A stretch of DNA of 64,000 nt from Adineta vaga (taxonomy: Eukaryota > Animalia > Rotifera). Position numbers and translations under genes: made by a program. The notes below the pieces were generated by a model that was not told the origin of the DNA, did not search any database, and saw nothing but the letters and a program-made list of their open reading frames with translations. The stretch spans positions 7,874,001-7,938,000 of the forward strand of contig CP075495.1 in the NCBI GenBank assembly GCA_021613535.1. Direction: 5' to 3'. This document shows, in pieces, positions 26,028 to 60,030 of this stretch (its first letter is position 1; every line of letters begins with the position of its first letter).

Positions 26028-26577
<550 letters not shown>

Positions 26578-26788
26578 TTAATTCGATCTAAAATAGTTAA
26601 AGATAAATCTTACTCAATCAATATGCAATATTCGACAGAACAAAGAGAAAGATATGTTAATGGACAATGACACGTAACCGACAACATTAAAGAGGAAAAG
26701 AAAAACAATTAGCAATATGTCGACGCAAATGTCAAGTTTGTTCTTCTTTCTGCATATGTGTTTTAAGAAAAATTCTTCTAATTTATTC

Positions 26789-26811
26789 ATTGGTTAATTT
26801 CTTTAACCAAT
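26789..26811. promoter_or_regulatory. Inverted pair of CCAAT boxes in the H3.3/SNX27 divergent intergenic region
   Basis: ATTGGTTAA-tttct-TTAACCAAT is a perfect 9-bp inverted repeat between head-to-head start codons 338 bp apart. Confidence 0.5.
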
Positions 26812-26894
26812 AGAAATCATTCATTCAACTGATGATTTTTTTTGTTTCGATTAATGAAAAAAACATCATAATCTCTTTTTCCAATAAGGAAATA

Positions 26895-32228: not shown

Positions 32229-32940
32229 AGTAGCAAAAAAGAAAAGATGGTTTTCAACATAAAATAAGTAAGTTTTTTTTGTAGTGTCTCCTATATATAC
32301 TGTGTCTAGTTTTGCCATATTTTATGAGGCATAATTTTTAGATAAACTATTTAGGAATTATTGTTGATATAGTGCATTGAAACATGACGGCATATACTTA
32401 CTTTGTTTTATATAATGATGTAAGCTTGAGTCGAAGAAAAATTTTGTATAGACATCGATAATTAAGTTAACGTAGCTCAGTTTCCAAATATTAGTAAACA
32501 TTTAAGTATATTTTGAACAAAACTCAGTTATTAAGTGCCATATCTTCGAAAAATAAACCGATTTTTATGAAAGATATTTGCATTATTTTGAGAGAACAGA
32601 GGTCATATGAAATATTAGGTAAGTTTTTAGATGTCTTCTTTTTTTTCAACAACTCTTGTAAATCTATTAGAGGTCAATAAGAACAATGTTCTTATCAACC
32701 ATAACTATAATTCAATCGATATATTTTCTAAATATCGATCGGTGTGACCTGAAAATCTTCACGGTGCACCGTTTTAATGTCTATGATATGTCCATTTCAC
32801 ATATAAGCTGCGCTCAGATCTCTTATTCAAACTTAAATGCGTTAATATCCACATCTTTTTTCCTTCAATCTTTTCAATTTAAAAAAAAGTTGTAAGTGAA
32901 TATTTTCAAATACAGATTTTTAATTTTATAATTGTGTAGA

Positions 32941-34866
32941 ATGGTCGGTCACCTAGAAAAGAGCAAAGGCGATATCAAGTCATTACGCATGTGTCAATTG
33001 TGTAATAGAATTTTGCAAGAATCTTTTAAGCTTTTATGTGGAGATCATATATGTAAATCCTGTATGCAAGGAATAACAGGGTATGATGAAATCAATTATA
33101 TTGTAGAAGTGAATATTTCTTCTTTTTTTTACTAGGAATATTATAAAGTGTCCAAAATGCTCACAAGAAACACACCTCAAACCATTCTGCGAAATCTGTC
33201 GAACAAATTTTTCTTCTAACACGACACTTGACGAACATAAACAAAAAGAATGTACTGGAACTATTGTATCATGCGATCTCAAAGAATATGGATGTTCAGA
33301 CTCAGTAAGTGATAGCCCTCTGTATCAAATTAATGATTAAATTATACTGATCCTAGCTAACATTTTTATTGGGAAATATATATCTAAATGTAGTCAAGAC
33401 ACAATTAAAAGGCTTGAAACCATTCTCCTCTACAGAAGCTTCTAAGAATATCTTTGATAAGAACATGTGAGCTGACCGATGTTGGGTATTAGAAAAAGAG
33501 AAAAATACCTGTAAGGTGTCATCAAATCCGATGGTTTTAATTATTTTCGTTCTCAGCACATTCAGATGAGTTCTTTTTGTGAGGCCAATAATATATATGT
33601 ATTTAAATCAAATGACAAAGCACTCCACGATCTATTTAGATCTATCGAGTACAACTATCTAGCACTATCTGAGTGATGTTCATCAAAATGCGATCATTAA
33701 TGTCATTCGACGTTTACCGTTTAAATCACGTAATGATCAGTTGGAACGGACATCAACTATGGATGTCGATATGGAACCAAGTGGTGTTAGTTCAATGACA
33801 ACTGAAACTCTCAATAGTCAAATGCAAGAGATCTATGAAACAATTAATGTTCTTGCTAGTGGTATTCAAACATTAAATGATGACACACAACGTATTAGTA
33901 GTGATTCTGTTCGATTACAAACATCCATTGAAACAGTAACCCAAGAATGTGCATCCTTGAAGTTGAGTATTCAAGAGCAGAGTGTTTTCCTGAATAGCAG
34001 TAAACAAAAGCAAGATATAGTTCGACAAGAAGTTGCATCAATAAAACAAAAAGTGGATGATACACAATATGTATCATATGATGGCACATATACATGGAAT
34101 ATCAAAAACGTTCGAGAAAAAATGAGTAAGTAGAACGATTTTTAATTTCTTGTCTAATACTGATACATGAACGTTCTTATGAAAACTGTATTCCTTTTTA
34201 TATTTTGTAGATGACGCTCAATCCGAAAGACAAATGTCGATTTATTCACCACCATTCTATTCTTCACCGACTGGTTACAAAATGTGTGCTCGACTGTATT
34301 TACATGGTGATGGTAATGCACGTCGCACTCACATGTCATTGTTCTTTGTTCTTATGCGTGGTCTCAATGATGCAGGGTTGGAATTTCCATTCAACTATAA
34401 AGTGACATTCTGTTTGTATGATCAAACACCTCAACAAAGACATATCATTGATTCATTTCGACCTGACATCAAATCAAATAGTTTTCAACGACCACGATCT
34501 GAAATGAATATTGCCAGTGGTATTCCAAAGTTTTGTCCACTGGTAATGATTCAACAAGAAGGCAATTCATACGTTCGTGATGACGCAATGTTCATTAAAG
34601 TGATGGTGGATTTTGGTGAGATGCCAGAGACATTGTTACCCTATGCATTCAGCTTGAATCCAGGATTACCAATGCACATTCAACAAACAATGATTAGACA
34701 AAGATCCGAACGACAAGCTTCAAGGGAAGCACAAGAACCAACGAAATCGCCACGAACTCATTATGTGACCACAGATACGGAACAAACATTGCTTGCAACA
34801 ATGGAAGTAAATACGGGTGACAATGATCAAGACTCAAACATTGCAACAAATATTGACCGTCCATAA
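32941..34866 (+). CDS. TRAF family adaptor, copy A (RING, one zinc finger missing, coiled coil, MATH); 1-nt frameshift at ~33661 unless a rescue acceptor is used
   Basis: Exons 32941-33080 (CQLC..CGDHICKSC), 33136-33304, 33640/33663-34125 and 34211-34866 (SIYSPPFYSSPTGYKM..LYLHGDG..HMSLFFVLMRG..FPFNYKVTF..SFQRPRSEMNIASG). Confidence 0.8.
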
Positions 34867-35412
34867 ATTGTCTATTGTATATACCTGTATTTACATTTTT
34901 TCGTCGAATATTGTGATACAAATGTTTTTATAGCACAGCACTCTATTAAAAATAGCTGTAAAGGTGCGTAACATTTGCTTTTTATAAAATCACAGTTCTA
35001 TAGTTTGATTGCTAAGACTTTTATTGTTAATATTTTCTACTATATGAAAAAAGTACCATGACTACTTCAGCAATAGATCTGATGTTTTTATATAACTCTT
35101 ACGTATCTAACAAAACACTAACAACAGAATAATGGCTATATTTCAGCTGAGATTGAAAAACATCTATGATGATTTGGATAAACAAAACAGACCCATGCAT
35201 AGAAATAAGTTTGATAAACTATGTCATTCAACCAAATTTCACATCTCTTCTTCTTTATCAGCAAGATAAAAACGAAAATTCAAATTTTTCGAAAAGAAAT
35301 GAAAGCGCTTGAGTCGAACCGATATAAAACATTATGTTTTAAGCCACGAAGGCGTAACTTATACACCTATGTAAAACTTGTTTTACTCTTTTTCTCCTTC
35401 TAACGTCACCCC

Positions 35413-36565
35413 GTATTTTTGCACACGTGTTCTGCAAACGAAGAATAGATTTCGAATGCTTTCTTTTCTCATAAACATGTTGCAAGTTTCATACTATGAG
35501 ACATAATCTATACTAAATCGAACTCTTTGTTGTTTCGATGATGAAATAAAAAATAAATATGCAAATTTATTGAAATCAATGGTATTATTGAACGAATTGC
35601 ATCATATATAAGTTGAAATAATTCAGAGAAAAGGAAGTCAAATTTTCATCCATCTTTGTTTCATATTTAAAAAGCAATTCATTCTCTACCAACCTTTCTA
35701 AGCTATTTTTGAAACTTTTTTTCTTCTTCTTCGTTACAAGTCAACAAAGCAGTTTCTAAAAGTACGTACTCACCAAAAGAAACTCTTTAGATTAGGTACT
35801 CTCCTCTGTCATTCCCTATCCAATAACAAATCGACAATAAGACATCCAAGTTTATTCCAGTTTACATTATTCATCTAGATAATTTCACTATCTCTACAAT
35901 ATATTTTTATTTTGGAAAAAAGATACAAACTACTTCTACTTCTACATCTACTCAGTATAGCAGCTAATACAAGTGTACGAATATCTTTAAACTTGATTAG
36001 CATAGAACGTCACGTAAGAAGTTGAGATACAGTGTTATGATCAACTAAAAATTGTAAAAGAGTTTATCTATCAACTATTTTTCTTTCGTTACACAATTTT
36101 AATGAAGGAAATAAAGTATTTATCCATCCTAGGGACAACAGTAGAAATGCTTCGGTGAAAACAAACTTCGATTGATTTCGAATTTCGAAATAGTGCAGTT
36201 TGATCAATCCTTCAAACAGTTATTTTCTATTTTGCATTAGTCATCGACACATTTATATTTCTGAGAAGTGACTCTGCGACTTAAGATACAGAAAAGGTAG
36301 ATTTTGCATGTTTTGATTCTTTTTTTTATTGCTATGCGACGCAAAAAATATTTGATCGAAATCACATACTATTTAATTCGCTTCAATTGAAAGTACTGTC
36401 AACAAGTAAACCCGAATATTTTATCGTTCTTTCCAACTCAGTTTGTTGTCTTTATCTTTACATGGCTTTTTCTTTCCTCTGGCGGGGGATGACTCACTTG
36501 GAACTTTCCAAGCCTTTCATACAAAAATGCAAAGTCTGCTGCCTACAGTGTGAAATCAAAAGGTA
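35413..36565 (+). repeat. Outer inverted repeat, left arm (~1.15 kb, partner 54861-56012)
   Basis: Near-identical reverse complement from gtatttttgcacacgtgttctgcaaacg to gcctacagtgtgaaatcaaaaggta. Confidence 0.93.
36490..36509. promoter_or_regulatory. AP-1 plus kB-like composite element, duplicated at 54917-54936
   Basis: TGACTCA-ctt-GGAACTTTCC. The partner arm reads TGACTCA-ctt-GGAATTTTCC. It is followed by a short candidate exon ending aag|gta. Confidence 0.5.
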
Positions 36566-38209
36566 GGTTGTGTTTTATTCTTTGCTTACGCTATAAAAAT
36601 CCTTTCAAAATCTCTTTAAAACGTTGACGAAAGCGTTTTATGAAGTTAACAAACTCTCAAGTCAGCCAGATTTGAAGATTTCCGATAGTTTCTGTCTGGT
36701 CTTTTGTTTACTCTCTCGCTTCCCTAAGGTTTCCGAAAATATGTAACTCAGCAGATATCCATACACATAAATATACTCTACCCCACATCCTCACCCAAAC
36801 CCTCAAGATAACTTTGCTAAGTAGCAAAAAATATCGAAAAACTAGACGTCAGACTTCGTCAGATATGTTTGTTATCGCTAAAAACGAAAAGTGTTTCACT
36901 TTTTCAAATAGTGGTACCATAAAATACTGGTTTTATTCAACCATTACTGCAACGTTTTAGTTTGCTATAAACTACAGTCGATCTTTTGAAGTCTTCGAAT
37001 ACGAAATGCTTTACTTTAACATTTAAAAAAAATGATTACGTAGTCCAAGCATATAAAAAACATGATCACGAAGATCGATCATTTTCATATCAATGTTTCA
37101 ATTGAAAAATCTGAAATTTATGTCACAGACAGAGGTCATGTCAAGCTATGCAAAGAAAAAACAATTATCTCAGTGGCTTTTATATAGGAATTGCAGCTTT
37201 CAACATGTTGTCCGAAAACCTTTTATTACTCATTACTAACAATATCAATTTTGATAATATAAACCTATTTCAAACATGAATTTGTTTACTAATTATTAAC
37301 TTCTCATACTCGAGAAGAATATATATGCAATCCTTGCTATCCAGTATCATTTTAACACACTGTAACACCTCAGTTTTTCTAATACAGAATTTTTGCGGTG
37401 CCGTCATTGAGCGTCATCTTTATTTGAAAGCTCTCAAAAAAAAATTTGATTGGCTACACACTCTCATTGCTTCGCTAAATACACCTTTTTATTTCTTTGA
37501 TAAAATCGTTACTAGCTAGAAATGCATATGCATCCTTGCAATTGCTTCATCCCATAGATTTTCTCACTCATGATATTTTTTTTTAAATTTTGTTTTGTTT
37601 ATTATAGCAAATGAAATTTTATGAAGATGATCATGCCTATTTTCTCCAGTAGATGAGGAGTTCTTCAATACCATTATATATACACATATGAAGGTATTCG
37701 AATGTTCAAACACATAAAAACCTGATAATATCTCTTATATACGCAAAAAATTATCCTGGAAAACTTTCCACAATAGAAGTCATTAAAAGTAGTTAAATTT
37801 CAATCTTTTGTTAAGTTTTTTTCTAAAAATACTATTCGCTGCAGGAGGGTTTCATTGGAGAGCGGTTGGGGTCGCGACGCATCTCCAATCTTTTGAACTT
37901 TTGTTTTTTTAGCATGATATTTTACGGGCATTTTTCCACATTTTCGAAATTTTCATAAATTTTTTATGCCTTTTCTCAGTTTTTTGCACCCCGGAACACA
38001 TTTGATTTGTTGTGACATAGATAAGAACTCGTCAAGTCATGTCACTTTTCCGTTCCCGCTGTTGATAAACGCTCTCACTACCATTCCGCTTATCAAATTA
38101 AGGCAAATAAAATCGAAAAAGGGTACAAAAAAATACAGAAAAGTGAAGTTCTTACATAAAAACTACGTCAAACTAAGAACACTATGTCCTACTTTAGTTT
38201 TATTCAACA

Positions 38210-40191
38210 ATGGTTGGCTTCGACGCCAGGAATAAGAGTTCCATTAATTCTCTCTACATATGTGGAGTATGTAACTTCATTTTACGGGAGCCTTTTCAGC
38301 TCAAATGTGGTCATCGTCAGTGCAAAACCTGTATCGAAGATACTGAAGGGTATACTTATTATCAAACAGCCGATTAGACTATTTAACACTTCTTTTCCTC
38401 TTCATTTAGGGATGTTCTCAAATGTTCAGAATGCCAAGAAGAATCATCGAAAACTGAGGTTGCCATTTCAAACATGTTTCTTCTTCTATGAAATTGTCAT
38501 TCTTTTCTTTTTCACTATTCAGATAATGCCAGATCGTGGTTTTAGAAATGATATGAAAACTCTACCAATTGTTTGTTCACTATGTGAGTGGAATGGCTTA
38601 TTCAAAGACTATGAGGTAACTTTGGAATACACATTCACTGATATTCTTACCATTGATCGACCATATTTATTGCATGAAATTGTGCAGAAGAACTTTATTC
38701 ACATATAAAGCCATCAGCATTTCACTTGTACGTTGTTTTTTGTTCTAGACCCATCTCAATAAAGTACATCCAAATCCTATTTGTGAATTTTGTGGAGAAA
38801 AGTTCACGTCTAATATTCGATTTGATGAACACAAACAAAAGGAATGTCCTAAAATCACAGTGTCTTGTCCACTCAAAGATTATGGATGTTTAGATTCAGT
38901 AAGTTGCAATTATTTATATTAAATAATAACATATGTAAAAGTATCCGAATCTATCCTCAACATCATCTTAATTGCAATGATATGATTGATAGTTTACAAC
39001 GATTTGTTTAGATCTATCGAGTACAACTATCTGAACACTATCTGAGTGATGTTCATCAAAATGCGATCATTAATGTCATTCGACGTTTACCATTTAAATC
39101 ACGCAATGATCAAATACAAAAAACATCAACCACGAACGTTCCTTTAAAGTCTGAAATCCTGAGTTCAACTGTAAGCACACTGGCAACTGAAACTCTCAAT
39201 AGTCAAATGCAAGAAATCTATGAAACAATTAATGTTCTTGCTAGTGGTATTCAAACATTAAATGATGACACACAACGTATTAGTAGTGATTCTGTTCGAT
39301 TACAAACATCCATTGAAACATTAACCCAGGAATTTGCATCCTTGAAGTTGAGTATTCAAGAGCAGAGTGCTTTTCTCGATGGTATCAAGCCAAATCAAGA
39401 AATTCTTCAACAAGAAGTTGCATCAATAAAACAAAAAGTGGATGATACACAATATGTATCATATGATGGAACATTGATCTGGAAGATTACTAGTTTTCAT
39501 GAAAAAATGAGTAAGTTCAGTCTGATGTGTCACCCGTCGAATGTGATCATAAATAGTTGAGAAAAAATAAGAATAAGTCTAAAGAATGATTGATATTTTA
39601 GTGGATGCTCAATCCGAAAGACAAACATCGATCTATTCACCACCATTCTATTCTTCACCGACTGGTTACAAAATGCGTGCTCGATTGTATTTACATGGTG
39701 ATGGTGATGGTGATGGTAATGCACATCGACCTCACATGTCATTGTTTTTTGTTCTTATGCGTGGTCTCAATGATGCAGGGTTGGAATTTCCATTCAACTA
39801 CAAAGTGACATTCTGTTTGTATGATCAAACACCTCAACAAAGACATATCATTGATTCATTTCGACCTGACATCAAATCAAATAGTTTTCAACGACCACGA
39901 TCTGAAATGAATATTGCCAGTGGTATTCCAAAGTTTTGTCCACTGGTAATGATTCAACAAGAAGGCAATCCATACGTTCGTGATGACACAATGTTCATCA
40001 AGGTGATGGTGGATTTTGGTGATATGCCAGAGACATTGTTACCCTATACATTCAGCTTGAATCCAGGATTGCCAATGCATGTTTATCAAACAAAGGTCAG
40101 AGAACAAATACAACTTCTAGCTGATATAGAGCGTAGACAACAAGAAGTGCTCCGTGAAGGAAAAGCAATTCCCAGGTCAATATGGGCATAA
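38210..40191 (+). CDS. TRAF family adaptor, copy B (RING, 2 zinc fingers, coiled coil, MATH), 6 coding exons
   Basis: True ATG at 38210 (MVGFDARNKSSINSLYICGVCNFILREPFQLKCGHRQCKTC). Exons ~38210-38349, 38410-38458, 38523-38615, 38749-38898, 39012-39510 and 39602-40191 splice in frame. Confidence 0.9.
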
Positions 40192-43100
40192 GAAGAAATA
40201 GAACTCTGTTACAAGCGTTTTGTCCATAATACTAAAACAAAATAATTAACAACATTTACGCATTATGTTTCGTTTTTTTTCCAAAAATGTCTAATAGTAT
40301 TGTATGAAAAAAATATTCAAAATTTTTTTTAAATTTGTGATACTGTTTGTATAATAGTCGGTAACTGCATTTTGTGTTCAATTTCGATGCCCTTAGGACT
40401 TCGGTATAATTTGTTTATTCTATCAAAAATGTTCCTATTCTTTCGCTGTATGAAAATATTTTTATTGTAAAACCGGTGTTTCTCTCATGTTTCTGATTTT
40501 ATCGATGGTCCTACAAACGCAACAAAATTAGCTATTCAAAATGATACAGTGCAGCTCTAATCTTTCAAATTAAATTATCCATCATACTACCAAGATGTTG
40601 ATATCACAATTCATTGATAAATATTTTTATTTCCTTATTTTCTAAACATATTTACGTTTTGTGTTTTTTGTGTATTTCTTGCTTTAATAATGAGTTAATT
40701 ATTCTATAATAATGCACATGCATTATGTGTATCTAAAAAAGTTCACTGACTATCTGAAGATATTAAAACTATTTTGAATAAAGTAAAGATTTGCAAACAA
40801 ATCATTGAAAATGAGTTGATTTATTTTTTCTTTAAAACTCATCTCAGTTTTTAAAATGCAGAATATTAAAATGAGAAGTGTAACGATAGAAAACATCAGA
40901 GCAAGTACACCGAAGTAATACTACGCAATAATCACAGCGCCATACGAATAACAACAACTTGAGTAGATAAGATTTCATTTTGAATTAAGTATTAATTCAT
41001 AAGAAAAATGATGATTATGATGACTATGAAGAAGAACATATTTCCAGAATTTGGGTCTCCATCAATTAATATTTGCATGTTTATTTTGATGCTTTTCGAA
41101 GTTTCATATCAGCAATTAATAGACCGGCATCCTGATCCATTATGCTAATTACAGCACGAACCTTAAAGGCAAAATTTATCTTTTCATGAAAACGAAGGGC
41201 AACATTTTAATGAAATTATACATTCTAATTAAAGAGTCTTTATTGACAATGAACACATTAATTATATAACGTCTGCGTAACAAATGCTACAGATGATGTT
41301 AAAAGATGCCCTACATGTCGGTGTTTTTTTGGTGAAAATATTTTCGTATTTTATATGAGGATAATAAATGATGTACATTTTGAAGTGTTTATTGTCCTTG
41401 CTTTGTTCTCTTTGCAATCTATGTAAATAACTCTCATTTTTATATACTACATAGATTTGACCGACATGCTTTTATTTATCTGAAGCACTCTAAAAAAATA
41501 GAAGTAAATTTTCCTCTAATGTTTGTCATGATCATATAAGATGGTTTATTTCCATCCTAATACTGATGTTATATTGTTTGAAAAATGATAAAATATGACA
41601 TGAATTTAGCTAATCTTAGTCCTTATGATCTGTTGTAACGAAACAAAATTATAATCAGTACGAATGAACATTTTCTCAACTAAAAAGTTAGTAGTCTATC
41701 AGAATATTATACACAATCGATTGTCGACTTACTAGTGTATTCTAAAAACATGATATATTGATAAAATCAATTGAGATTTTCAGATTATGATAGTTTTTTT
41801 AAGAGTACATCTTTACAATCAACTTTTCCTATAGATTAACTGATACTGATTCATCTCATTTGTACGTATTGTTTGTTTTGAACGATTTGTTCTAATTCAT
41901 ATTCAATATTTCATTCACTTTTTCTTTAATTATTATATTTTTCCATTGACATCAGTAGTGGGAAAGTATCCTGTGTAGTCGAAAAGAATGAATGGTATAT
42001 TCCTGTAAGGTATCGATAAAAATACGTAGTATTATATTTCATAATAAAAATGTTAGAGAGGGAAAGAAAGAACAATGATTAATAAGAAGTAAATTACAAA
42101 GAAAATACTTTCTTCTCTTCTTCAAGCAAGAGACATGATATTATAGTAAATGCACGCATATTTCTCATTGATTTTATTTTTTCTACATGCACATAAACAC
42201 TCTCAATCGCGATTTCTCTTGAGTATACGAGCGAAGTCATGTCGAATGAAAAAAAAACGCATGCACATGATTGTCTATATGTCTTAAAGCATTAAGTTTC
42301 GTGTATTTGGACAAAATAGCATACTAATATACTACAGGTGATATAGCTATAATTCTAATTACTCGATACAATCGACAAGAATAACTCTCAATAATTTAGT
42401 TAGGAAAACATCCGATATCATAAAACATATTCTACTAGTTTTTTTAAATCGACTCCAAAGTTCGTTCTTTATTCCATATAATATTCGGATATGAAATAAA
42501 AAAGCTATCGTTGTGATCGATAGATGCATTCAATGTTGTTTGTGATATAAACTTACCGAGTAGTTCAAGAGATGAGTGCAAGTTTTTTGTTCGCAATGCT
42601 ATCAATTGTAAGATTAAAAGCTAATGGGACGAGATTAAGATTCGTGGATCAAAAGTAGTCATATTTTTTTTCTTATAAGAATATATATTTGCTTACTCAG
42701 AGTCGACGTAAATGCACTCAAATAGAGAATGGTGTGATAAATTTGAACACAGTTTGAGAATGAACAGTTATTAGGGAAGAAATGAATTATTCCCATTTAC
42801 GAATATAAGTAAAAGAAATGAGTCAGACACATCCGGAATTATTCTTTATTACAGCAGGGAAAATAGAATGAATCACAGACAAATAACACATCTATAAATA
42901 TAAAAATATTCTCATTGTGGATATATGTTAATACTCTTATAAATTCTTCTGCGTACCATCAATCGAAATAAATTTCAAGTTCCGAAACAACATGTACTCA
43001 AAGTAAGTTTAATTCTGACCTCTTCGTTGCATTAAGTAGATTTTATCGTCTATAATCATTTCAATACATCATATCTTTCTGATGTAATTTAGATATCGAA

Positions 43101-44203
43101 TATTCAAAACATTGTCTAAGAAATTATTCATGAGAATATCACGTGTAATATGAATATTTTTAAAGAAACTACTAATAGCAGAGACATCGACAGGTAATCG
43201 CGAGTGAAACGTCTTTTGTGATTCTCTTGGAACTACTCGGAGAGCATTTTTTTATTTTAACGAATCTTTTCAAATTTCAGGTTGTTCAGCTCGATAGACA
43301 AGATTAAAAACAATAGTTTGACTCTTTTCTCATGCATTCATTCATAGGACTAAGCAAGTAAGTACTTCTATCTCGCTGCATCTATCCTTCAACAAGAAGA
43401 TGTTATTGATGCATTTATTCCATTCCTATTAATCGTTCTCACGATAGCACATGTTCGATGTTTTTTCTTTTCAAACAGACGTGAATATGCAATCATATAT
43501 GTCATTTCGATTATCATGTGTGACTACAATAAAACAGTCAATTTGTTAATTCTCGAGTATTTTCGTATAGGTATTATTACAAAGTTAATTTTCTTATTTC
43601 AACATTTTCATTCAAGAATGTCCGAACTCTTTTTTTTATACTGCAAAAATTATTGTCTAAATGGAAGATTAGTTGTGAAATCGCAGATAATTTAAAACAA
43701 ACACACAATGCAATCGGAATCATAATCATTTCCAAGTAGTTACAAGCGTCTGTGAATATATTGATGACATTGGTGTGATGAAATCATTTTCAAATATTCC
43801 AATTATGATTTTGAAAGAAAATGAATGAGTAATGCAATGAAAAAAACTAATTAGTGAAAATGATCGATTACACCGTTTCACTCATTTCAGGGACTTCTTC
43901 AATCGAACAAATGTATTGCTTACTCATTTTTGCCATAGTAGCATGTGAACATTCATTATGATCAAATATTGATGCAGTGAATATTCATAAAGTTCCAAAT
44001 AATTTTTTCGATCGTTTTATTTCTGAAATTTAATTTGAATATTATATTGTACGCATGAATCATTTTTAAAAAGATGAAAATCCTGCATGTATTCTATACA
44101 TATATATCTATGTACTTCGACTCTGAGTAGATCTATCAACATAGTCTTCGATCCTCATCAATCAAAAGAATTCATCTTGTTTCATTTTAAGATTTCATAT
44201 ACA

Positions 44204-45942
44204 ATGGTAGGGATCGATGCTCAGAATATCAACACTTTCGACAACAAATTCATTTGTCACATCTGTTCACTCATTCTTCGCCATCCACTACAAATCAACT
44301 CTTGTGGACATCGATTTTGTCAATCTTGTTTACATATCCACAACCAGTACGTATCACTCATCTATACACATTCATCTTCACTTTATCTCTCATCTATCAT
44401 AGAGCACCCATCAACTGTCCACAATGCCAAACACCAACAACTACAAATCAAGTAAATATATCTTTCTCTCTCTCTCTCTCTTTTTTTGCTCGCCACATTC
44501 GTACAACTCATTTAGATCATGATTGATCGTGGTTTCGATCATGACATGCAAGTGTTACCTATCATCTGCTCACTTTGTCAATGGAGAGGTACTCTAAGTA
44601 CCTATCAGGTAATTTCATTGTGACTTATTTTCCATTCTCTCTCTACCATCTGTCACTCAAACTACACAGGATCATCTTCAACAAACTCATCCACATCAAC
44701 AATGCATCCATTGTCATCAGCAGTTCAGTTTATTCGATCAGCTCAATGAACATATATCAACACAATGTCAACAGATCACTTGTGAATGTGTGTTGAAAGA
44801 TTTTGGTTGCCGTCACCAGGTATGAATGTTGAGTTTACAGTATGAGTTGTGAGTGTCTGTTGTATAGATTGTTCGACATGAAATGTTGCATCATTATCGA
44901 AGTGAAGAACACCAACAGTCTGTGATGAACATTGTTGAACAAATAAAATTACAGTTGCGAGAAGGTCAAATGCTACGGAATGAGCGAGACAATGAAGATG
45001 ACGCGAATGCACTAGTAGAATTGGAAGAAACGCTAAATATCCTGGCAAGTGGTGTTAGAGCATTGAGAGAAGAGAGTGCACAACACAACAGTGGAACAGT
45101 TGAACATGAAACTAATACATCAAGTTTAGTGGCAAATATGTCAAAAGTGAGATCGTTGATCGAAGAGCAGAATTCTCTTTTCGAGGGAACGAAGCTAAAT
45201 TGTACGATATTAAAGGAAGCAATAACATCGCTCGAAGAGGGCCTCGATGATTTGCAGCACGTATCATATGATGGCACATATACATGGAAAATCAAAAACG
45301 TTCGAGAAAAAATAAGTAAGTAGAACGATTTTTAATTTCTTGTCTAATACTGATACATGAACGTTCATATGAAAACTGTATTCCTTTTTATATTTTGTAG
45401 ATGACGCTCAATCCGAAAGACAAATGTCGATCTATTCACCACCATTCTATTCTTCACCGACTGGTTATAAGATGCGTGCTCGATTGTATTTACATGGTGA
45501 TGGTAATGCACGTCGCACTCACATGTCATTGTTTTTTGTTCTTATGCGTGGTCCCAATGATGCAGTCTTGAAGTTTCCATTCAACTACAAAGTGACATTC
45601 TGTTTGTATGATCAAACACCTCAACAAAGACATATCATTGATTCATTTCGACCTGACATCAAATCAAATAGTTTTCAACGACCAAGATCTGAAATGAATA
45701 TTGCAAGTGGAATTCCAAAATTTGCACCTGTGTCAGTGATAGAAGCAGAAGATAGTCCATATGTTCGCGACGACACAATGTTCATCAAAGTGATGGTGGA
45801 TTTTAATAATATGGCAAAAAATTTACTGCCCTATGCGCTTAGTCTCAATCCAGGAATACCAGAACGAGCACAGCAAGAAATGATCGAGAAAGAAAGAGAA
45901 AAACGTGCTAGATCAGATAATCTACAACAGCAACAATCGTAA
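44204..45942 (+). CDS. TRAF family adaptor, copy C, 6 coding exons, intact
   Basis: MVGIDAQNINTFDNKFICHICSLILRHPLQINSCGHRFCQSC..CPQC. Zinc fingers CSLC..HLQQTH and CIHC..H...C..C.....GC..H, a coiled-coil exon, and MATH exon 45401-45942. Confidence 0.9.
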
Positions 45943-46415
45943 TAATAAACACATAATAAGCAATTTATCGACTTCTACAACTTCCTTGTTTTAATAAACT
46001 TGGGAAAACAATATTTCTCCAACCTGAGCAGATGGTTAAACAAGATGTAAATATATTTAGTCAAGAAATCTTCTAAATCTATTGACATGTATAAGTGTGG
46101 CAGTAAAATGTTTTTTTATACTTTTTGTTCAAAACCGAAATCCAGAAATATATAAAAATAAATTTTGAAATAATACAACAATTTGTTATAAAATCTACAA
46201 AGGGTATAGAATGAACTGATTTTCTTTGAAAAACATTTAGGGTGTGATTGATTGTATCTTTCGCTTTTTTCATGTTTATTGAGAAATAAATGCTTTTCAA
46301 TGCCTTATAAACGCAGTTATAAAATTTTCATCATAGTTTTGAAACTGAAAAAAGAAATTTTTAATTTATATTGTTTATTAAGAGTGCTCAAGAATAGCTC
46401 TTCAAGTGTATTTGT

Positions 46416-48096
46416 TCATAACATTTGTTTTTGTATATATCTTGAAATGCCAGGATGGAGACTCACTAACTTTGATAACAATAAGTCCGGCATATCATCA
46501 AAATCCACCATCACTTTAATGAACATTGTGTCATCACGAACGTATGGATTGCCTTCTTGTTGAATCATTGCCAGTGGAAAAAATTTTGGAATACCACTGG
46601 CAATATTCATTTCAGATCTTGGTCGTTGAAAACTATTTGATTTGATGTCAGGTCGAAATGAATCAATGATATGTCTTTGTTGAGGTGTTTGATCATACAA
46701 ACAGAATGTCACTTTGTAGTTGAATGGAAACTTCAAGACTGCATCATTGGGACCACGCATAAGAACAAAAAACAATGACATGTGAGTGCGACGTGCATTA
46801 CCATCACCATGTAAATACAGTCGAGCACGCATCTTATAACCAGTCGGTGAAGAATAGAATGGTGGTGAATAGATCGATGTTTGTCTTTCGGATTGAGCAT
46901 CATCTAAGCATAATATAGAATTCTCATTACGAAAACGAACTATACTAAACATCATTTATACTATAAGTATACCTGAGTTACTTACTCATCTTTTCTCGGA
47001 TGTTTTTGATTTTCCATGTATATGTACCATCGCATGATACAGACTGTGGATCATATATTTTCTCTTCCACTGATATTATATCCTACTTCAAACGTTCCAG
47101 ATTTCCGAAAGAATTTTCCGTTTGCTTGATTTGTTGTTCGATCGATAGTTTGATTTCTGAGACATATTTCAGCAAACTTTGCAATTTAGTGTCTGACTCC
47201 ATTAGTTCATGTTGACACCATCCAATACTTTCGTTTAATACTGCAATATCACTGCTCAAGATATTCAGCATTTCGTAGAACTCTTCCACCGCATTCGTAT
47301 CATCTTCATTGTCTCTTCCATTTCGCCACATTTGAGACTATAGTATCTGTGATTTTATTTGTTCAACAATGTTCATCACAGACTGTTGGTGTTCTTCACT
47401 TCGATAATGATGCAACATTTCATGTCGAACAATCTATACAACAGACACTCACAACTCATACTATAAACTCAACATTCATACCTGGTGACGGCAACCAAAA
47501 TCTTTCAACACACATTCACAAGTGATCTGTTGACATTGTGTTGATATATGTTCATTGAGCTGATCGAATAAACTGAACTGCTGATGACAATGGATGCATT
47601 GTTGATGTGGATGAGTTTGTTGAAGATGATCCTGTGTAGTTCGAGCGAAAGATGGTAGAGAGAGAATGGAAAATAAGTCACAATGAAATTACCTGATAGG
47701 TACTTAGAGTACCTTTCCATTGACAAAGTGAGCAGATGATAGGTAACACTTGCATGTCATGATCGAAACCACGATCAATCATGATCTAAATGAGTTGTAC
47801 GAATGTGGCGAGCAAAAAAAAGAGAGAGAGAGAGAGAGAGATATTTACTTGATTTGTAGTTGTTGGTGTTTGGCATTGTGGACAGTTGATGGGTGCTCTA
47901 TGATAGATGAGAGATAAAGTGAAGATGAATGTGTATAGATGAGTGATACGTACTGGTTGTGGATATGTAAACAAGATTGACAAAATCGATGTCCACAAGA
48001 GTTGATTTGTAGTGGATGGCGAAGAATGAGTGAACAGATGTGACAAATGAATTTGTTGTCGAAAGTGTTGATATTCTGAGCATCGATCCCTACCAT
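46416..48096 (-). pseudogene. TRAF copy D: inverted partner of copy C with two in-frame TAG stops in the coiled-coil exon
   Basis: RING and zinc-finger exons and introns are near-identical to copy C. TAG at 47340-47338 and 47085-47083, both aligned to Glu codons of copy C. The MATH exon (46904-46416) is open. Confidence 0.8.
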
Positions 48097-49386
48097 TGTA
48101 TATGAAATCTTAAAATGAAAGGTAGACCATGTTTGATTTCAATGATAGAGTATGTGTTTACAGGTGCTTGTTTATCTGTGTGATGTATTATATTGCTCTG
48201 CATCATAATTGATTCATTCCTTATAGCATGACAAAATTATGTACCCAATGCAGTAGAAGAAATACAGAGTGCGTCAAAGAAAGGGAAAAGATCCCAAGTT
48301 ACTATAGTTGTCATAGAATTGAGTTGTTTTAATGTCGGTAAAAAACTTGAACTTATATAATTGTTGGTGATCAGCGTGTTCACCAAGGAAAAAGACTTAC
48401 GAATAAAATAATTGACACTTATCTGACATTGTTATATTTCAAGGTATTAATGATATGGTGTTTCTATGGTGTCACTGATATATTCAGACCAACAATACAT
48501 TTTAGCTAGTCGGAATCTACCAACTTTATTTTTTTCTGCGTTTCTTTTTGCACTTAAACACCAATGTGTCATTCAGGAATCATGAGGCGTCTAGCAAAGA
48601 AAACTTCTGTGTTTTTACTTACCGATTAGATCAACAAAAGCGTGGGTCTCGTCAACTTTTACGATTGAAATGTGAAGAAAAAATTATGATAAGCAATCGG
48701 TATATATAGAAACAAATATTAATGCTTCGTTGGAAATTCCATCGGTAGGGTTGTACAAGAGAATTAAATCAAAACATTCCAGTGCTTTATCGTTGAAATT
48801 GACTTCTATCTGTCATATAAATTTCAATAATCGATTCATTCCGTTCTTTCATGGATGTATGTTTTGTTTTTTCGATCTTTAAAGTATTTTTTATTTTAGA
48901 ACATGTAAAACTTATTTGAATATCGCTATAATATATAGAAGCTAAAGAAAACGCAACAATGTAACAATAGTTAGCTTATGAACAAAGAGAACGCAGAATA
49001 TAGTTAATAAAATAGTACAACAATTTCAAATAGTTTGTCAACAGAGTAGATTTTTCAAACTTCATTCCAGATCAATCAATATAGTATCATTTATGTGTGA
49101 TTTTCATTGCTCGATAACTTATAGAGAGAGAAAGAGGATTTTTTTTAATTGTTGGAAATTACAAAAAAATTACATCTAACTGATTTATGTTTAAACTGAT
49201 AGTCGAATATATTTATATCATAGAACGTATATTTTCTAATGCTCAATTAGTATTAATAGATGATGAAAAGACATATAATTTTTTAATGAAATCAGTTCGT
49301 ATAACAATATTATTATTAGAAAAACATTTTATGCGGATATTTTATATTCAGTCAGACTTTCCTCAGAAAATTCTATATATAATAGC

Positions 49387-49458
49387 ATTTACTTCTCACA
49401 AAATAAGCTTAGTATCCTAATGAATTAGAATACTAAGCTTATTTTGTGAGAATTAAAT
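49387..49458. repeat. 72-nt near-perfect palindrome/hairpin
   Basis: atttacttctcacaaaataagcttagtatcctaat-ga-attagaatactaagcttattttgtgagaattaaat: 35-bp arms, 2 mismatches. Confidence 0.9.
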
Positions 49459-50091
49459 AGTGGTGAATGATATATGAAAAATAATCCTCTATATATGTTG
49501 CAAATGTCTTTCTCTGTTTTATCAAACATTAACTTGAACATTTTCCCACTAAGATATGTCATTCTATCGTTATAACGCATGAAATTTATCGGTCTTTTCG
49601 TTAGGTTTTGATGATTTGTTCAAAACTAATTACAAGCGATTTCGAACTCTAACTAAATAAAATTGAATACATTTTCAAAGTTTAATTTTTTCATTTTTGT
49701 TCGCTACTATCTGACAGAATGAATTAATATTAAAAATGGAATATTGGTAGACAGCTTCCTCTGAAGTTTTACGGTTTCATCAGGGTATCTAACAAACATT
49801 TTTATCGAACAATTACAGCCATTGAAGTTTTGTCTACAACTATCGTTTTTATTAACTAAGTATATGTTAGAGTTATGGTAGACGAACTGAGGAAAACATT
49901 TACAACATATATCGAGAACTAATCTACATATATCATTCACTAAACTAACCAAGTTTATACAGAAATATATCTGAAAGAGAAATAGTTCAATCTCAGCAAA
50001 TAAATTATCAGACGTTTTGAAAATGCACATAATTACTATTTTATGATACGACTTCTGGAAGAAAGTTAAAGAGTTTCTCACATAAGTGTTG

Positions 50092-52187
50092 CTACCGAAA
50101 TGTCCCATCATTGTTAATGTTCGTTGAGGCCTGTGCTTCATTGTTATCATTGAGTATATTTAATGGTGGTGGTGGTGATGTAATTGCTGTTAGCGGTAGT
50201 TGTGTTTCATTATTTTGTGTAACACCTGGTAATGCAGCACGAGCTCCTGGTGATGATGGTGTTTGTTGCGCTTGTTGTTGAGCTCGACGATCTGTTTCTT
50301 GTCGGATCATTGTTTGTTGAATATGCATTGGCAATCCAGGATTCAAACTTAATGCATAGGGTAACAATGTCTTTGGCATATCACCAAAATCCACCATCAC
50401 CTTGATGAACATTGTGTCATCACGAACGTATGGATTGCCTTCTTGTTGAATCATTGCCAGTGGAAAAAACTTTGGAATACCACTGGCAATATTCATTTCA
50501 GATCTTGGTCGTTGAAAACTATTTGATTTGATGTCAGGTCGAAATGAATCAATGATATGTCTTTGTTGAGGTGTTTGATCATACAAACAGAATGTCACTT
50601 TGTAGTTGAATGGAAACTTCAAGACTGCATCATTGGGACCACGCATAAGAACAAAGAACAATGACATGTGAGTGCGACGTGCATTACCATCACCATGTAA
50701 ATACAATCGAGCACGCATTTTGTAACCAGTCGGTGAAGAATAGAATGGTGGTGAATAGATCGATGTTTGTCTTTCAGATTGAGCATCCACTAAAATATCA
50801 ATCATTCTTTAGACTTATTCTTATTTTTTCTCAACTATTTATGATCACATTCGACGGGTGACACATCAGACTGAACTTACTCATTTTTTCATGAAAACTA
50901 GTAATCTTCCAGATCAATGTTCCATCATATGATACATATTGTGTATCATCCACTTTTTGTTTTATTGATGCAACTTCTTGTTGAAGAATTTCTTGATTTG
51001 GCTTGATACCATCGAGAAAAGCACTCTGCTCTTGAATACTCAACTTCAAGGATGCAAATTCCTGGGTTAATGTTTCAATGGATGTTTGTAATCGAACAGA
51101 ATCACTACTAATACGTTGTGTGTCATCATTTAATGTTTGAATACCACTAGCAAGAACATTAATTGTTTCATAGATTTCTTGCATTTGACTATTGAGAGTG
51201 TCAGTTGTCACTGTCGTTGTTGTTATCATTGAGCTAGCACCACTTGGTTCCATATCGACATCCATAGTTGATGTCCGTTCCAACTGATCATTGCGTGATT
51301 TAAATGGTAAACGTCGAATGACATTAATGATCGCATTTTGATGAACATCACTCAGATAGTGTTCAGATAGTTGTACTCGATAGATCTAAACAAATCGTTG
51401 TAAACTATCAATCATATCATTGCAAATAAGATGGTGACGGGGATGCACTTAGATAGTTTCACATATATTACTCTTCAATATAAATAATTGCAACTTACTG
51501 AATCTAAACATCCATAATCTTTGAGTGGACAAGACACTGTGATTTTAGGACATTCCTTTTGTTTGTGTTCATCAAGTCGAATATTAGACGTGAACTTTTC
51601 TCCACAAAATTCACAAATAGGATTTGGATGTACTTTATTGAGATGGGTCTAGAACAAAAAACAACGTACAAGTGAAATGCTGATGGCTTTATATGTGAAT
51701 AAAGTTCTTCTGCACAATTTCATGCAATAAATATGGTCGATCAATGGTAAGAATATCAGTGAATGTGTATTCCAAAGTTACCTCATAGTCTTTGAATAAG
51801 CCATTCCACTCACATAGTGAACAAACAATTGGTAGAGTTTTCATATCATTTCTAAAACCACGATCTGGCATTATCTGAATAGTGAAAAAGAAAAGAATGA
51901 CAATTTCATAGAAGAAGAAACATGTTTGAAATGGCAACCTCAGTTTTCGATGATTCTTCTTGGCATTCTGAACATTTGAGAACATCCCTAAATGAAGAGG
52001 AAAAGAAGTGTTAAATAGTCTAATCGGCTGTTTGATAATAAGTATACCCTTCAGTATCTTCGATACAGGTTTTGCACTGACGATGACCACATTTGAGCTG
52101 AAAAGGCTCTCGTAAAATGAAGTTACATACTCCACATATGTAGAGAGAATTAATGGAACTCTTATTCCTGGCGTCGAAGCCAACCAT
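50092..52187 (-). CDS. TRAF family adaptor, copy E (inverted partner of copy B), intact, long Q/P/N-rich tail
   Basis: ATG at 52187. Same exon structure as copy B. MATH exon 50789-50092 reads GDGNARRTHMSLFFVLMRGPNDAVLKFPF. Confidence 0.9.
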
Positions 52188-54860
52188 TGTTGAATAAAAC
52201 TAAAGTAGGACATAGTGTTCTTAGTTTGACGTAGTTTTTATGTAAGAACTTCACTTTTCTGTATTTTCTTGTACCCTTTTTCGGTTTATTTGCCTTAATT
52301 TGATAAGCGGAATGGTAGTGAGAGCGTTTATCAACAAAGTCAACACCAACACCTGGAATGTGAAAGTGATTTGATTTGTCATGATCTTAGCTTATTTACA
52401 GCGAATGAGGCTTTTTATGGAAAATTTCACAAAAGATGCAAACTTAACATATTCTAATAAATTCTGTTTACAAAAAAATTCGTGGCAAATTTTCTATGTT
52501 CATAAAAAAAAGAAATAGCAGATGTCGTTGATATCTTAAAACGTATGAACATTTTCTATGTACATAATATATGTGATACTGTCTATGACTGACAGTCTAT
52601 TGTTCATTGAGAAAAAAAGTAATCAAATAAAAGAAGATAAGAAAAATGGCTAAAATGCATTGAAAGCACTTTTGAAAATATGTTGTCCCATTATTTTGGT
52701 GGCCATTTGAGGATTTAAATAATAATGAATTGTATTCTATACTCTTATAATCTTAAAGTTCTCTAGCCTATTTTTAACAATGAGCATCAGAAGAGAAAAA
52801 TTAATGAAGCGTGCGTGAGTGTATTGTTTGATTTAGGGATGAATGTAGAATTTATACCAGGCATGAGAGATGAACCATTGAAATCAGCTTTTTGACATCA
52901 AGAATCAAAACTATCTTCATCTTATTCGACGACATTATTATTTGATGACAATGGACGATCTAATTTCCCAAAAATCCCAAGTTTTCTTGTTATATCACTA
53001 ATCGTTATGTCTGCATTATAATGAGATTAGGATCTGATATGGAAAGAAATTTTGTATTCGAAAAAAGGCAAATCAATACACCGAGGACTTTGTAAGGAAG
53101 TGAAGAATAGAAAAAATAAGAGTAAAAGAACGAAAAGGAGGAAGAAAAAACGTCACCATATCGCGTTACCAAACAAAAATGTCAAAAGAAACTAAAACGT
53201 TCTAACTAGAATATATCAACATCCATCAATGTATGTAGTGATATACGAATATCAGTTTTTTTTCTACGAACGAACGGTTTATCTAGAGTACTATTATCGT
53301 TGACCAAACTGTTTCGAGAATAATTGTATTTTCTTTTTCGAAATAAAAGAAAAAAAGAAACGCGATACAGTATAGAGATCACACAATAAAATAGAAGAAA
53401 CAAATAATTAATGATGAATGCTGTGGATATTGTGCTGTTCCATTTTGTTGATACAGAGAGTACATTCGTAGATGTTGTTATGAAGAAAGTAGCAGAATTT
53501 AATTGTGATTATTGATAATGAAGAAGAATACCATCAAAAGAGGCATTTTTCATAGACTGTACGTTCTAGGTTATTACGATTCTTATGTCGACAATGTGGA
53601 TCTTATTCTAGTGCCTAAGACATTACGCTTCAACAATATTTTATTATACTTGATGAATACGAATGACTGCACACAGATATAAATTTAAGCTAAATGAAAG
53701 TATCAGCCACGTTCATCGTCTTCTTATGTAGAGTACGATGAGTTTTATCTCTACGTGAGTTCAGTCAAATTAAAAATAAATATGTGATAATTCAATTATA
53801 TAACTCGTAAATAATACTCATTGGATGTCAAAATAAGATATGCATAGCTGCACGAAAAGACATGATTTTTTCTGAGTAGTGACAAATACTTTTGCCCTTT
53901 TCGTCCACAATACAAAGTACAAAGCGTGATTTTTTTTTCGATAAAAAATACTGCATATAAGGACATCAGGTGCAAACTATACTGAGCAGAAACAGAATTC
54001 CTAAAATATGTCGATATTGATAAAGTATGCTCGCATGTATTTTTGACTTAACCGATGTTAATAACAATAAAAAAAATACTCATTAATCGCATTTAAAACT
54101 ATTTGAATTGTTTAATCGTTTATCTCATTGGAATCAAAACTTAGCATTACTACTAAATATCTATCACTATAACTAGACAGAGATGACGAATAAAAATTAG
54201 CAGAGAAAAAAATCTAAAACAGTATGTGAATAATGAATATTTTTCAGTATAATCTATCGTCTAGCGAACGATATGCGTAAATCTGAGAGTTGTAAATGAC
54301 AACACCAACCAATCCTTGGTTGCAAATCAGATATTTGGATAACCTACACAAATGTATAAAATAAGGAAAAGATAATTTTTTGTAACTAATTACATGACTG
54401 TAGGATTCTGTGAACGAGATCATGAACCGATAGATAAACACCTTCGAATCGCATGGCATCCTTTTTATTATTTTATTCTCTAAAAATTTGTTGTATTTTT
54501 CTTGAGAAAAGAAACGTCTTTAATGTCCGGAAGTGCATTATTTTCAATAATCTACGAATGTATCCTAATCTATAGGCACTTATTGATTGAACAATGAACG
54601 AATTTCGTTCACATTCATATAGATTTGAATTAAAATACAAATGGATGTTTTGATACTAATAATTTCTATTAAATCTTAGAATGTAGAATCTTAAACATTG
54701 ATTATTAGACTTCACTTATACATGAGATGAATGACTCATGGACATCTATCGCTATGAGCGAAGTGAAGATGATTCAAAAGTGATTCACAAACACTTGTTG
54801 TCTAATAGAAATATTCACAAATTCTTACGTAAAAACTACCCAAATAGATGAACAATAACG

Positions 54861-56012
54861 TACCTTTTGATTTCACACTGTAGGCAGCAGACTTTGCATT
54901 TTTGTATGAAAGGCTTGGAAAATTCCAAGTGAGTCATCCCCCGCCAGAGGAAAGAAAAAGCCATGTAAAGATAAAGACAACAAACTGAGTTGGAAAGAAC
55001 GATAAAATATTCGGGTTTACTTGTTGACAGTACTTTCAATTGAAGCGAATCAAATAGTATGTGATTTCGATCAAATATTTTTTGCGTCGCATAGCAATAA
55101 AAAAAGAATCAAAACATGCAAAATCTACCTTTTCTGTTTCTTATATCGCAGAGTCACTTCCTAGAAATACAACTGTATCGACGACTAATGCAAAATAGAA
55201 AATAACTGTTTGAAGGATTGATCAAACTGCACTATTTCGAAATTCGAAATCAATCGAAGTTTGTTTTCACCGAAGCATTTCTACTGTTGTCCCCAGGATG
55301 GATAAATACTTTATTTCCTTCATTAAAATTGTGTAACGAAAGAAAAATAGTTGATAGATAAACTCTTTTACAATTTTTAGTTGATCATAACACTGTATCT
55401 CAACTTCTTACGTGACGTTCTATGCTAATCAAGTTTAAAGATATTCGTACACTTGTATTAGCTGCTATACTGAGTAGATGTAGAAGTAGAAGTAGTTTGT
55501 ATCTTTTTTCCAAAATAAAAATATATTGTAGAGATAGTGAAATTATCTAGATGAATAATGTAAACTGGAATAAACTTGGATGTCTTATTGTCGATTTGTT
55601 ATTGGATAGGGAATGACAGAGGAGAGTACCTAATCTAAAGAGTTTCTTTTGGTGAGTACGTACTTTTAGAAACTGCTTTGTTGACTTGTAACGAAGAAGA
55701 AGAAAAAAAGTTTCAAAAATAGCTTAGAAAGGTTGGTAGAGAATGAATTGCTTTTTAAATATGAAACAAAGATGGATGAAAATTTGACTTCCTTTTCTCT
55801 GAATTATTTCAACTTATATATGATGCAATTCGTTCAATAATACCATTGATTTCAATAAATTTGCATATTTATTTTTTATTTCATCATCGAAACAACAAAG
55901 AGTTCGATTTAGTATAGATTATGTCTCATAGTATGAAACTTGCAACATGTTTATGAGATAAGAAAGCATTCGAAATCTATTCTTCGTTTGCAGAACACGT
56001 GTGCAAAAATAC
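54861..56012 (-). repeat. Outer inverted repeat, right arm (partner 35413-36565)
   Basis: Reverse complement of the left arm with only scattered substitutions and small indels. Confidence 0.93.
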
Positions 56013-59314: not shown

Positions 59315-60030
59315 TGTAAACCTTGTCTTAAAATAGAATTAATCCTAAGAATAATTCAAATATACTTACCTATTCTATGTTTTTTCCGTCTTATATATTG
59401 CCCATCTCTCGGCATCATACAACTTATATTCGCATCATTTATATTCTAAAGAGGTATTTCGCTACAGTGAATTTCTTCTCACATGTATAATTTGTCGCAT
59501 CACAGTGGTGTTAGAAAATTAATTTTTGTCTCCAGAGAGGATGTGCTTGTCACCAAAAAAAAGGAAGACATTTGAACTAATTCGATAATTACATCAAAAG
59601 CATATACTCAAATATTAAGTACGAAAATATTCTTCCTTTTCTATACATCTCCACGTGTAGTTGACACGTGTCTAAAGTTCTGATTGCCAAGAGAATAAGT
59701 AGAAAGACAGATCCCATAGATATTTCTGCTAATAATGTATTTTATTATTCGTGACTAACAATATCTTTAGGCAGAAAAAAAGAACGAATTTTTTGACACA
59801 AAAAAAAACGATTTGTTCACAAAAGAAATGATTCGGACACAGCAAAACACGATTAAATATAAATAGAAAAGACGACATTAGAATAGATAAAATCAATGCA
59901 CACGAACAAATAAGATACAAAGAAAAAAGTTTAAATTACATCTAAACATCGGAAGACTAAAGAAAAATGAGATTATTTGTTTTCTTTTCATTCTTTAAAT
60001 GACTAGATTAATCATGTTATTTGATTATTA

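Follow-up and report, generated by a model that had tools for sequence, protein, structure and literature searches.

The TRAF cluster on contig 2

The bdelloid rotifer Adineta vaga carries on contig 2 a cluster of five TRAF-like gene copies, here called A to E, which lie within 32.9-52.2 kb of the window, that is, the whole stretch of 64,000 nucleotides that was analysed (7.874-7.938 Mb of the contig). Copies A, B and C are on the forward strand and copies D and E on the reverse strand. The nearest relative of a copy changes along the gene, and this mosaic is very probably the product of interlocus gene conversion among the clustered copies, with part of the gene evolving in concert. The genome comprises 100.8 Mb in six contigs and is AT-rich, the window has about 30% G+C, and the introns are short with GT..AG borders. 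A second TRAF cluster, the sister of this one, is found on contig 5. The five copies are:

32941-34866, forward strand: copy A, TRAF-like; exons 32941-33080, 33136-33304, 33640-34125 and 34211-34866; MATH domain PF21355, E = 1.1e-40
38210-40191, forward strand: copy B, intact TRAF-like gene; exons 38210-38349, 38410-38458, 38523-38615, 38749-38898, 39012-39510 and 39602-40191
44204-45942, forward strand: copy C, intact TRAF-like gene; MATH domain E = 7.8e-41; RING PF13923
46416-48096, reverse strand: copy D, probable pseudogene with in-frame stops; C-like at the 5' end and E-like in MATH
50092-52187, reverse strand: copy E, intact TRAF-like gene and palindromic partner of B; MATH match to human TRAF2

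Judged by their predicted domains, the cluster genes are of the TRAF-type adaptor/E3-ligase kind, with the layout RING, TRAF zinc finger, coiled coil and MATH. The copies were searched exon by exon. The TRAF-C/MATH domain, PF21355, was found in A, C and E with E = 7e-41 to 1e-40, and the MATH exon of copy E matches human TRAF2 TRAF-C structures with E = 6.9e-46. The MATH exon is open in all five copies, and its SxSFQRP...NIASG core is unchanged in every one of them. Exon 1 encodes a RING finger in B (PF00097, 23.5 bits, cut-off 21) and C (PF13923, 29.5 bits, cut-off 27), with TRAF3_RING scoring slightly under its own cut-off. The zinc finger zf-TRAF (PF02176) reached 24.2 bits on exon 4 alone, below the cut-off of 27, because the domain is split over exons. 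Exon 5, searched alone, gave only weak matches of coiled-coil type. Genome-wide, the TRAF/meprin MATH profile is above its cut-off at 41 loci at least, a large TRAF expansion for an animal with a genome of this size.

The preliminary description of this DNA had spoken of five TRAF paralogues. Five copies are indeed present, but they are not five intact genes. Copy A is partly decayed: it lacks exon 3, its exon 2 being fused in frame to exon 4 (33136-33304), and the exon search gave no RING match in its exon 1, where the Cys/His spacing is altered. In the reference allele of A, one base is missing near 33660, and as a result translation of exon 5 from its acceptor at 33640, which RNA validates, runs into a stop after 10 codons; the second allele, present in an RNA contig, has 22 letters where the reference has 21 and is in frame. 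Copy D is a probable pseudogene. Its exon 5 contains two in-frame TAG stops (47338-47340 and 47083-47085) and its C-terminus is truncated and diverged, although the E-like MATH exon remains open. A genome search with the diverged coiled-coil part of D revealed no closer match at any other locus. The coiled-coil exon of copy C (44868-45315) is unlike that of A, B and E.

Transcription and splicing are seen for A and B. RNA contigs give the joints 33079/33135, 33304/33640 and 34125/34211 in A, and 38142/38198, 38348/38409 and 38456/38521 in B, which has an intron of the 5' untranslated region (5'UTR) at 38143-38197. The 5'UTR exon of A ends at 32267, and a contig loose end at 32940 maps to 32238-32267. 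The RNA contig that joins 32267 to 32940, one base 5' of the ATG, defines a 5'UTR intron of 672 nt (32268-32939).

Mosaic tracts among the copies

The five genomic copies were aligned with MAFFT, and tract coordinates are those of the window. The principal tracts are:

33627-34070, forward strand: B/E-like part of A, covering the end of intron 4 and most of exon 5
33740-33800, forward strand: A/E tract (LERTSTMDV...), with its partner in E at about 51206-51284; 58/61 to E vs 31/61 to B, Fisher p = 2.6e-8
34071-34241, forward strand: C-type tract in A, corresponding to 45261-45431 of C; end of exon 5, whole pre-MATH intron and start of the MATH exon
34364-34640 (A) and 39767-40043 (B), forward strand: MATH block that sets A and B against C, D and E at seven sites
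46476-46907, reverse strand: MATH exon of D, 96.3% identical to 50362-50793 of E

The 5' exons of copy A have no close partner and are only about 60% identical to those of B and E (228/359). At 33627 the relationship changes abruptly. Downstream of this border A matches B and E at 108/113 positions in 33627-33739, and in 33801-33984 it is identical to B at 180/184 and to E at 179/184 positions, so that the coiled-coil exon is B/E-like, as the preliminary description had it. The comparison of 108/113, 180/184 and 30/30 with the 228/359 of the 5' exons gives p = 3.7e-13 (Fisher test). Between these two stretches lies the A/E tract, which had been described as matching E and not B and does so. 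The version carried by B in this region (39100-39200) is unique in the haploid genome.

The tract of about 170 bp that A was said to share with C, including the pre-MATH intron, is also as described. Across 34071-34241 the two copies agree at 168/171 positions, with one difference in the intron, compared with 107/166 between A and B; in the adjoining stretch agreement falls to 91/184 (Fisher p = 3e-29). The C-type pre-MATH intron is found only in A and C.

Further downstream, A and B carry GLNDAGLEF and KFCPLVM in the MATH exon, while C, D and E carry GPNDAVLKF. The earlier claim that the MATH variants of A match only B holds in that these variants are shared and that A and B group together (support 99/99), but the word "only" is weakly founded, since A is identical to B at 271/277 positions and to E at 262/277 (p = 0.07). 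The MATH variants fall into just three types (A/B, D/E and C), about six residues apart. Copy D, reported as C-like at its 5' end and E-like in MATH, agrees with C at 690/697 positions over exons 1-4 and at only 144/246 across the coiled-coil part; in MATH it is closer to E (97/100) than to C (80/100; Fisher p = 2e-4).

Copies B and E are near-identical sisters outside the MATH exon, apart from islands. Upstream of the diverged island in intron 4, 5/861 sites differ, and inside it (38921-38971) the count is 16/51, so the island noted earlier is real. B and E also differ massively in 39113-39191.

Statistical tests and trees

The informative-site patterns are clustered along the gene, and the mosaic pattern is not due to chance. 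The pairwise homoplasy index (PHI) test gave z = -11.2, a value that none of 2000 permutations reached. GENECONV-style longest runs of shared sites were significant (p <= 5e-4) in seven of the ten pairs, namely A-B, A-C, A-E, B-D, D-E, C-D and B-E, and Fisher tests of the tract boundaries gave p = 2.6e-8 to 1.4e-58. The alignment proposed in the preliminary description reproduced every tract that it had named.

The trees included the four copies of the contig-5 cluster (c51 to c54). Exons 1-4 gave (c51,(A,(B,E))) / ((C,D),(c52,c53,c54)) with support 99/98, and a one-codon indel in the RING exon agrees with this split. The approximately unbiased (AU) test rejects monophyly of the five window copies for exons 1-4 (p = 0.011) and for the coiled-coil part (p = 0.019). 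Together, these results indicate that the split between B-type and C-type genes is older than the split between the contig 2 and contig 5 clusters. In the MATH exon, A and B form a clade with support 99/99, and the AU test rejects B+E (p = 0.010), although B and E are sisters in the rest of the gene.

Synonymous divergence (pS) in the 5' exons is 0.73-0.88 among A, B/E and C/D and 0.64-0.82 between window and contig-5 copies. In the MATH exon, pS is 0.05-0.31 within the window vs 0.5-0.84 to the contig-5 copies, and the bootstrap intervals of the difference exclude zero (0/5000). Nonsynonymous divergence (pN) in the same exon is 0.00-0.09. Purifying selection acts on the protein and cannot remove differences at synonymous sites or in introns, and therefore the 3' halves were homogenised after the two clusters had split. 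The topology test of the A/C tract was indecisive (p = 0.26) because the move of A leaves the unrooted topology as it is and alters only branch lengths. This test and that of the MATH exon were replaced by bootstraps of synonymous divergence and by Fisher tests. GC-biased conversion was considered and rejected: G+C at third codon positions (GC3) is 0.25-0.37 and is the same in homogenised and non-homogenised exons.

In a history without conversion, staggered partial duplications or unequal crossing-over would have made chimeric genes, and strong purifying selection would have acted on the MATH domain. Such a history has some appeal, as the MATH exon is highly constrained (see the pN values above), and copy A, being unique 5' of 33627 and B/E-like 3' of it, could have arisen by one unequal crossover in a tandem array. 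However, selection on the protein cannot account for identity at synonymous sites and in introns, such as the intron shared by A and C. Moreover, patches of 61-171 bp inside the gene, flanked to left and right by sequence with another partner, require double exchanges, which amount to conversion. Finally, C and D share 99% identity in their 5' parts beside a coiled-coil exon with a pS of 0.59, a combination that fits no single duplication date. An origin without any conversion is therefore very unlikely.

Independent read support

Because mosaics can also be made by assembly, contigs from independent sequencing bear on the question. Logan contigs were placed on 32700-38699 from three DNA runs of three studies and from one probable RNA run of a fourth study. 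These contigs have break points or loose ends exactly at 33627, 33799, 34071 and 35413. In each of the four runs, copy C contigs begin to match at precisely 34071, and the sequence before this point is that of C 45231-45260; the sequence before 33799 is that of B 39154-39183; and a B contig re-enters at 33627 in the three DNA runs. Illumina contigs with the distinct flank of X', an inverted repeat element described below, cover its partner X from 35413.

Depth agrees with these borders. In sequencing run X1 a depth of about 90 corresponds to one haplotype copy; the shared core of MATH reaches 909 (about 10 copies) and the A/C tract 413 (about 4 copies). For the C/D/E-type MATH block, the depth in runs X4 and X2 is about 6x that of single-copy sequence. 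Contig depths thus fit 2, 3 and 5 loci times two haplotypes. In addition, each of the three DNA runs has an 808-nt contig (34635-35442) that reaches from the 3' end of A into the unique flanking sequence and shows 0 differences, and RNA contigs connect the unique exon 4 of A to exon 5.

According to the artefact explanation, the mosaics or the palindrome would be consensus chimeras built from mixed reads of paralogues or haplotypes. There is precedent for this, as 20 palindromes of an older A. vaga assembly proved to be artefacts (10.1101/2020.06.16.155473), and the reference letters at 33787, 33791, 34177 and 38287, together with the 1-bp deletion in A, are missing from the Illumina contigs of some runs. 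Polishing, though, would be unable to swap a whole unalignable intron of 85 bp, and the contigs of three independent DNA studies break or start at the tract borders with the expected neighbours. The depths and the contigs that tie both ends of A to unique sequence point the same way. Overall, the independent reads speak strongly against a mis-polished chimera, and an origin of the mosaics in assembly is highly improbable.

In intron 4 of copy A, the alleles are represented by two contigs of similar depth, which over 187 bp (33331-33517) are distinguished by 7 sites and one indel (about 4%). The average homologue divergence published for A. vaga, 1.7%, is well below this value.

Several observations weigh against conversion as the full account of the mosaic. 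No conversion event has been observed directly. Within A, the span 33661-34635 is linked by the long-read assembly, as de Bruijn contigs end wherever a tract is shared. Taken by itself, the MATH tree is compatible with the topology without conversion (AU p = 0.25), and consequently the case for conversion in that exon rests on branch lengths and synonymous divergence. At 33787, 33791, 34177 and 38287 the reference letters are absent from the Illumina contigs placed there, which carry the letters of a paralogue (E, E, C and E, respectively), and the reference copies may be haplotype-mixed or mis-polished in fine detail. Lastly, the haploid assembly contains no donor for the B-specific 39100-39200, for the B/E intron island or for an island in A, and these divergent islands may be unconverted remnants instead of incoming tracts. 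As to the four letters, the contig builder may have discarded rare variants there, or the reference may contain small errors of polishing or haplotype mixing.

The interrupted palindrome

Four of the copies are part of an interrupted palindrome of 20.6 kb (35413-56012) with the order X-B-C / D-E-X'; copy A lies outside it. Its elements, to which strand does not apply, are:

35413-36569: element X, outer left arm, non-coding, 98.7% identical to X'
54857-56012: element X', outer right arm, the inverted copy of X
38060-40122: arm B, which pairs with 52336-50281 (arm E) at a baseline identity of 99.4-99.8%
44180-45813: arm C, which pairs with 48120-46491 (arm D)

The sequence of X is present only twice in the genome. 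The identity of arms B and E is broken by the islands 38921-38971 and 39113-39191 and by the MATH block 39725-39786, and the islands are 30-50% divergent. Between arms C and D, identity is 99% over 44180-45071 (the 690/697 already given), about 59% in the coiled-coil part and about 94% in the MATH part, and the gene ends of C and D are about 0.7 kb apart. The inverted arms are more alike than their age allows, as the near-identical 5' part of C and D beside their diverged coiled-coil exon illustrates.

The spacers of the palindrome are of unequal length and unrelated to each other, since their comparison gave only overlaps at the ends and one 71-bp match at 73%. They are not high-copy transposons. 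The X-B spacer (36565-38059, 1.5 kb) has about single-haplotype depth in the DNA runs, and in run X11 one contig skips it, passing from 36564 to 38060 through 14 letters of different sequence; the spacer looks like an insertion in one haplotype only. The large palindromes of the older assembly were artefacts, as noted above. This small interrupted palindrome, in contrast, is present in the chromosome-level assembly, and independent short reads agree with it.

The sister cluster on contig 5

The contig-5 cluster (10,515,046-10,541,587) contains four intact copies, of which c51, c52 and c53 are on the forward strand and c54 on the reverse strand. Like the contig-2 cluster, it has a tail-to-tail inverted layout. 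Among c52-c54, pS is 0.64-1.0 in exon 1 and 0-0.12 in the gene bodies, which are 96-100% identical. The odd copy out of these three changes from c53 to c52 along the gene (0/5000 permutations). The contig-5 cluster therefore shows the same pattern of homogenisation independently.

The genome is paleotetraploid, and chromosomes 1-3 of A. vaga are homoeologous to chromosomes 4-6 (10.1101/2020.06.16.155473). The flanks of the contig-2 cluster (25634-29103 and 60021-63955) correspond to 10544647-10547795 (forward) and 10502519-10498655 (reverse) of contig 5 and are thus in opposite relative orientation. It follows that the homoeologous regions are separated by an inversion, a breakpoint of which lies in the cluster or close to it, and this inversion could stem from recombination between inverted TRAF copies. 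Downstream of the contig-5 cluster there is an inverted repeat of 841 bp that is 99.4% identical. Just upstream of the TRAF cluster on contig 2 (29800-31113, forward strand), an intron-less open reading frame of 437 amino acids has the architecture of sorting nexin 17, with PX and a three-lobed FERM.

Gene conversion as the probable mechanism

The pattern at synonymous sites, the short tracts flanked by a different relative and the recurrence of the pattern in the sister cluster all bear out the earlier suggestion of recurrent segmental conversion. The copies are old duplicates, and two pairs of them, B/E and C/D, belong to the inverted duplication X-B-C / D-E-X' with its interruptions. Short events of non-allelic homologous recombination would repeatedly have copied stretches between the paralogues, mostly as conversions of about 60-450 bp, and one unequal exchange may have given A its B/E-like 3' half. 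A neighbouring paralogue would presumably serve as template during double-strand-break repair or meiotic conversion. Homology is probably sufficient for this only in the 3' half and, within the palindrome arms, over the whole gene, and for that reason the 3' half and the arms would evolve in concert. The RING/zinc-finger 5' exons of A, B/E and C/D would meanwhile remain anciently diverged. At the junctions of tracts with different donors, the nearest relative of a copy would change, giving the mosaic. For the 171-bp A/C tract, the direction C to A appears fairly secure from the sequence comparison, because D, the old partner of C, has the C-type exon end.

During oogenesis, A. vaga is reported to undergo crossing-over and to form conversion tracts between about 100 bp and a few kb in length (PMC13564844), and the tracts of 60-450 bp proposed here match these published sizes. 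The same work makes outdated the premise of an absence of meiotic recombination that lies behind the earlier suggestion of a mechanism usable without meiotic crossing-over.

The preliminary description had gone further and supposed that conversion assembles new domain combinations in the manner of cassette systems. This was not borne out, as the main effect of conversion here is to homogenise the conserved MATH/coiled-coil half. Programmed cassette conversion is known from the chicken immunoglobulin (Ig) pseudo-V genes, the variant surface glycoprotein (VSG) genes of trypanosomes and pilE/pilS of Neisseria. With these the TRAF cluster shares only the bare mechanism, the homologous copying of short segments between related copies. 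It has no dedicated expression site, silent donor array or hypervariable target, and it gives no sign of high-frequency switching. Instead of one expressed locus with silent donors, A and B are both transcribed and spliced (RNA contigs were placed on A and B only), and the converted MATH exon, far from being a variable segment, is the most uniform part of the gene by its pN.

A selected or programmed diversification, in which the palindromic cluster makes new adaptor variants from partly silent copies such as D, would fit some of the facts. Pseudogene D keeps an intact MATH exon, the B-type 5' part exists with either MATH type (B vs E) as does the C-type 5' part (C vs D), and the many MATH loci of the genome would fit as well. 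Against it, conversion affects the most conserved part, whose variants amount to three types about six residues apart; both A and B are expressed; there is no hypervariable target; and neither a shift in GC3 nor any other sign of unusually intense conversion is seen. Additionally, the tract borders are identical in runs of four studies from 2015-2024. New mosaics, which the preliminary description had proposed to look for among clones or individuals, did not appear in the contigs of these studies, although this is a weak test because contigs drop rare variants. Programmed diversification is thus extremely improbable, close to negligible. Another selective reading starts from what the two clusters have in common, their inverted layout, homogenised coiled-coil/MATH bodies and anciently distinct RING exons. 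In it, conversion would keep the trimerising half interchangeable for co-assembly, with distinct RING/zinc-finger heads and occasional new combinations of head and body giving variety to an expanded innate-immune adaptor family; this arrangement, too, is very improbable.

Comparison with known conversion systems

Primate Y-chromosome ampliconic palindromes undergo arm-to-arm gene conversion. The TRAF palindrome resembles them in its tail-to-tail inverted copies and in the high identity of its arms despite their age (X/X' 98.7%, B/E about 99.5%, C/D 5' part 99%). It differs in being small, at 20.6 kb, in having unrelated spacers of unequal length, and in that its arms also exchange sequence outside their own pair (A with B, C and E; D with E).

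Interlocus conversion and concerted evolution are known from mammalian TLR1/TLR6 (PMC2077338) and from human segmental duplications (PMC3790853, PMC4467073). As in these cases, short unidirectional tracts are exchanged between linked paralogues, the gene tree shifts along the gene, and, over part of the gene, the copies of a cluster resemble each other more than they resemble their orthologues. As with TLR1/TLR6, the family belongs to innate immunity. Unlike both, the TRAF cluster has five copies, including inverted ones, in a bdelloid rotifer host, and the partner for comparison is a sister cluster from whole-genome duplication and not another species. Conversion between a pseudogene and a gene is known for CYP21A1P/CYP21A2 (PMC3843699). 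Decayed copy D seems to exchange with its functional neighbours in a similar way. The TRAF cluster is thus a known type of gene conversion between paralogues, with exchange between palindrome arms added, and involves no new mechanism.

Significance for the family and for bdelloid genomes

For annotation, these results mean that trees based on the MATH domain will mis-date these TRAF duplications, that copy D should be treated as a pseudogene, and that copy A is frameshifted in the reference allele. Literature searches gave nothing specific on conversion in TRAF clusters of bdelloids, and earlier work on conversion in these genomes had centred on alleles. The cluster on contig 2 adds a well-bounded case of conversion between paralogues in a bdelloid genome.

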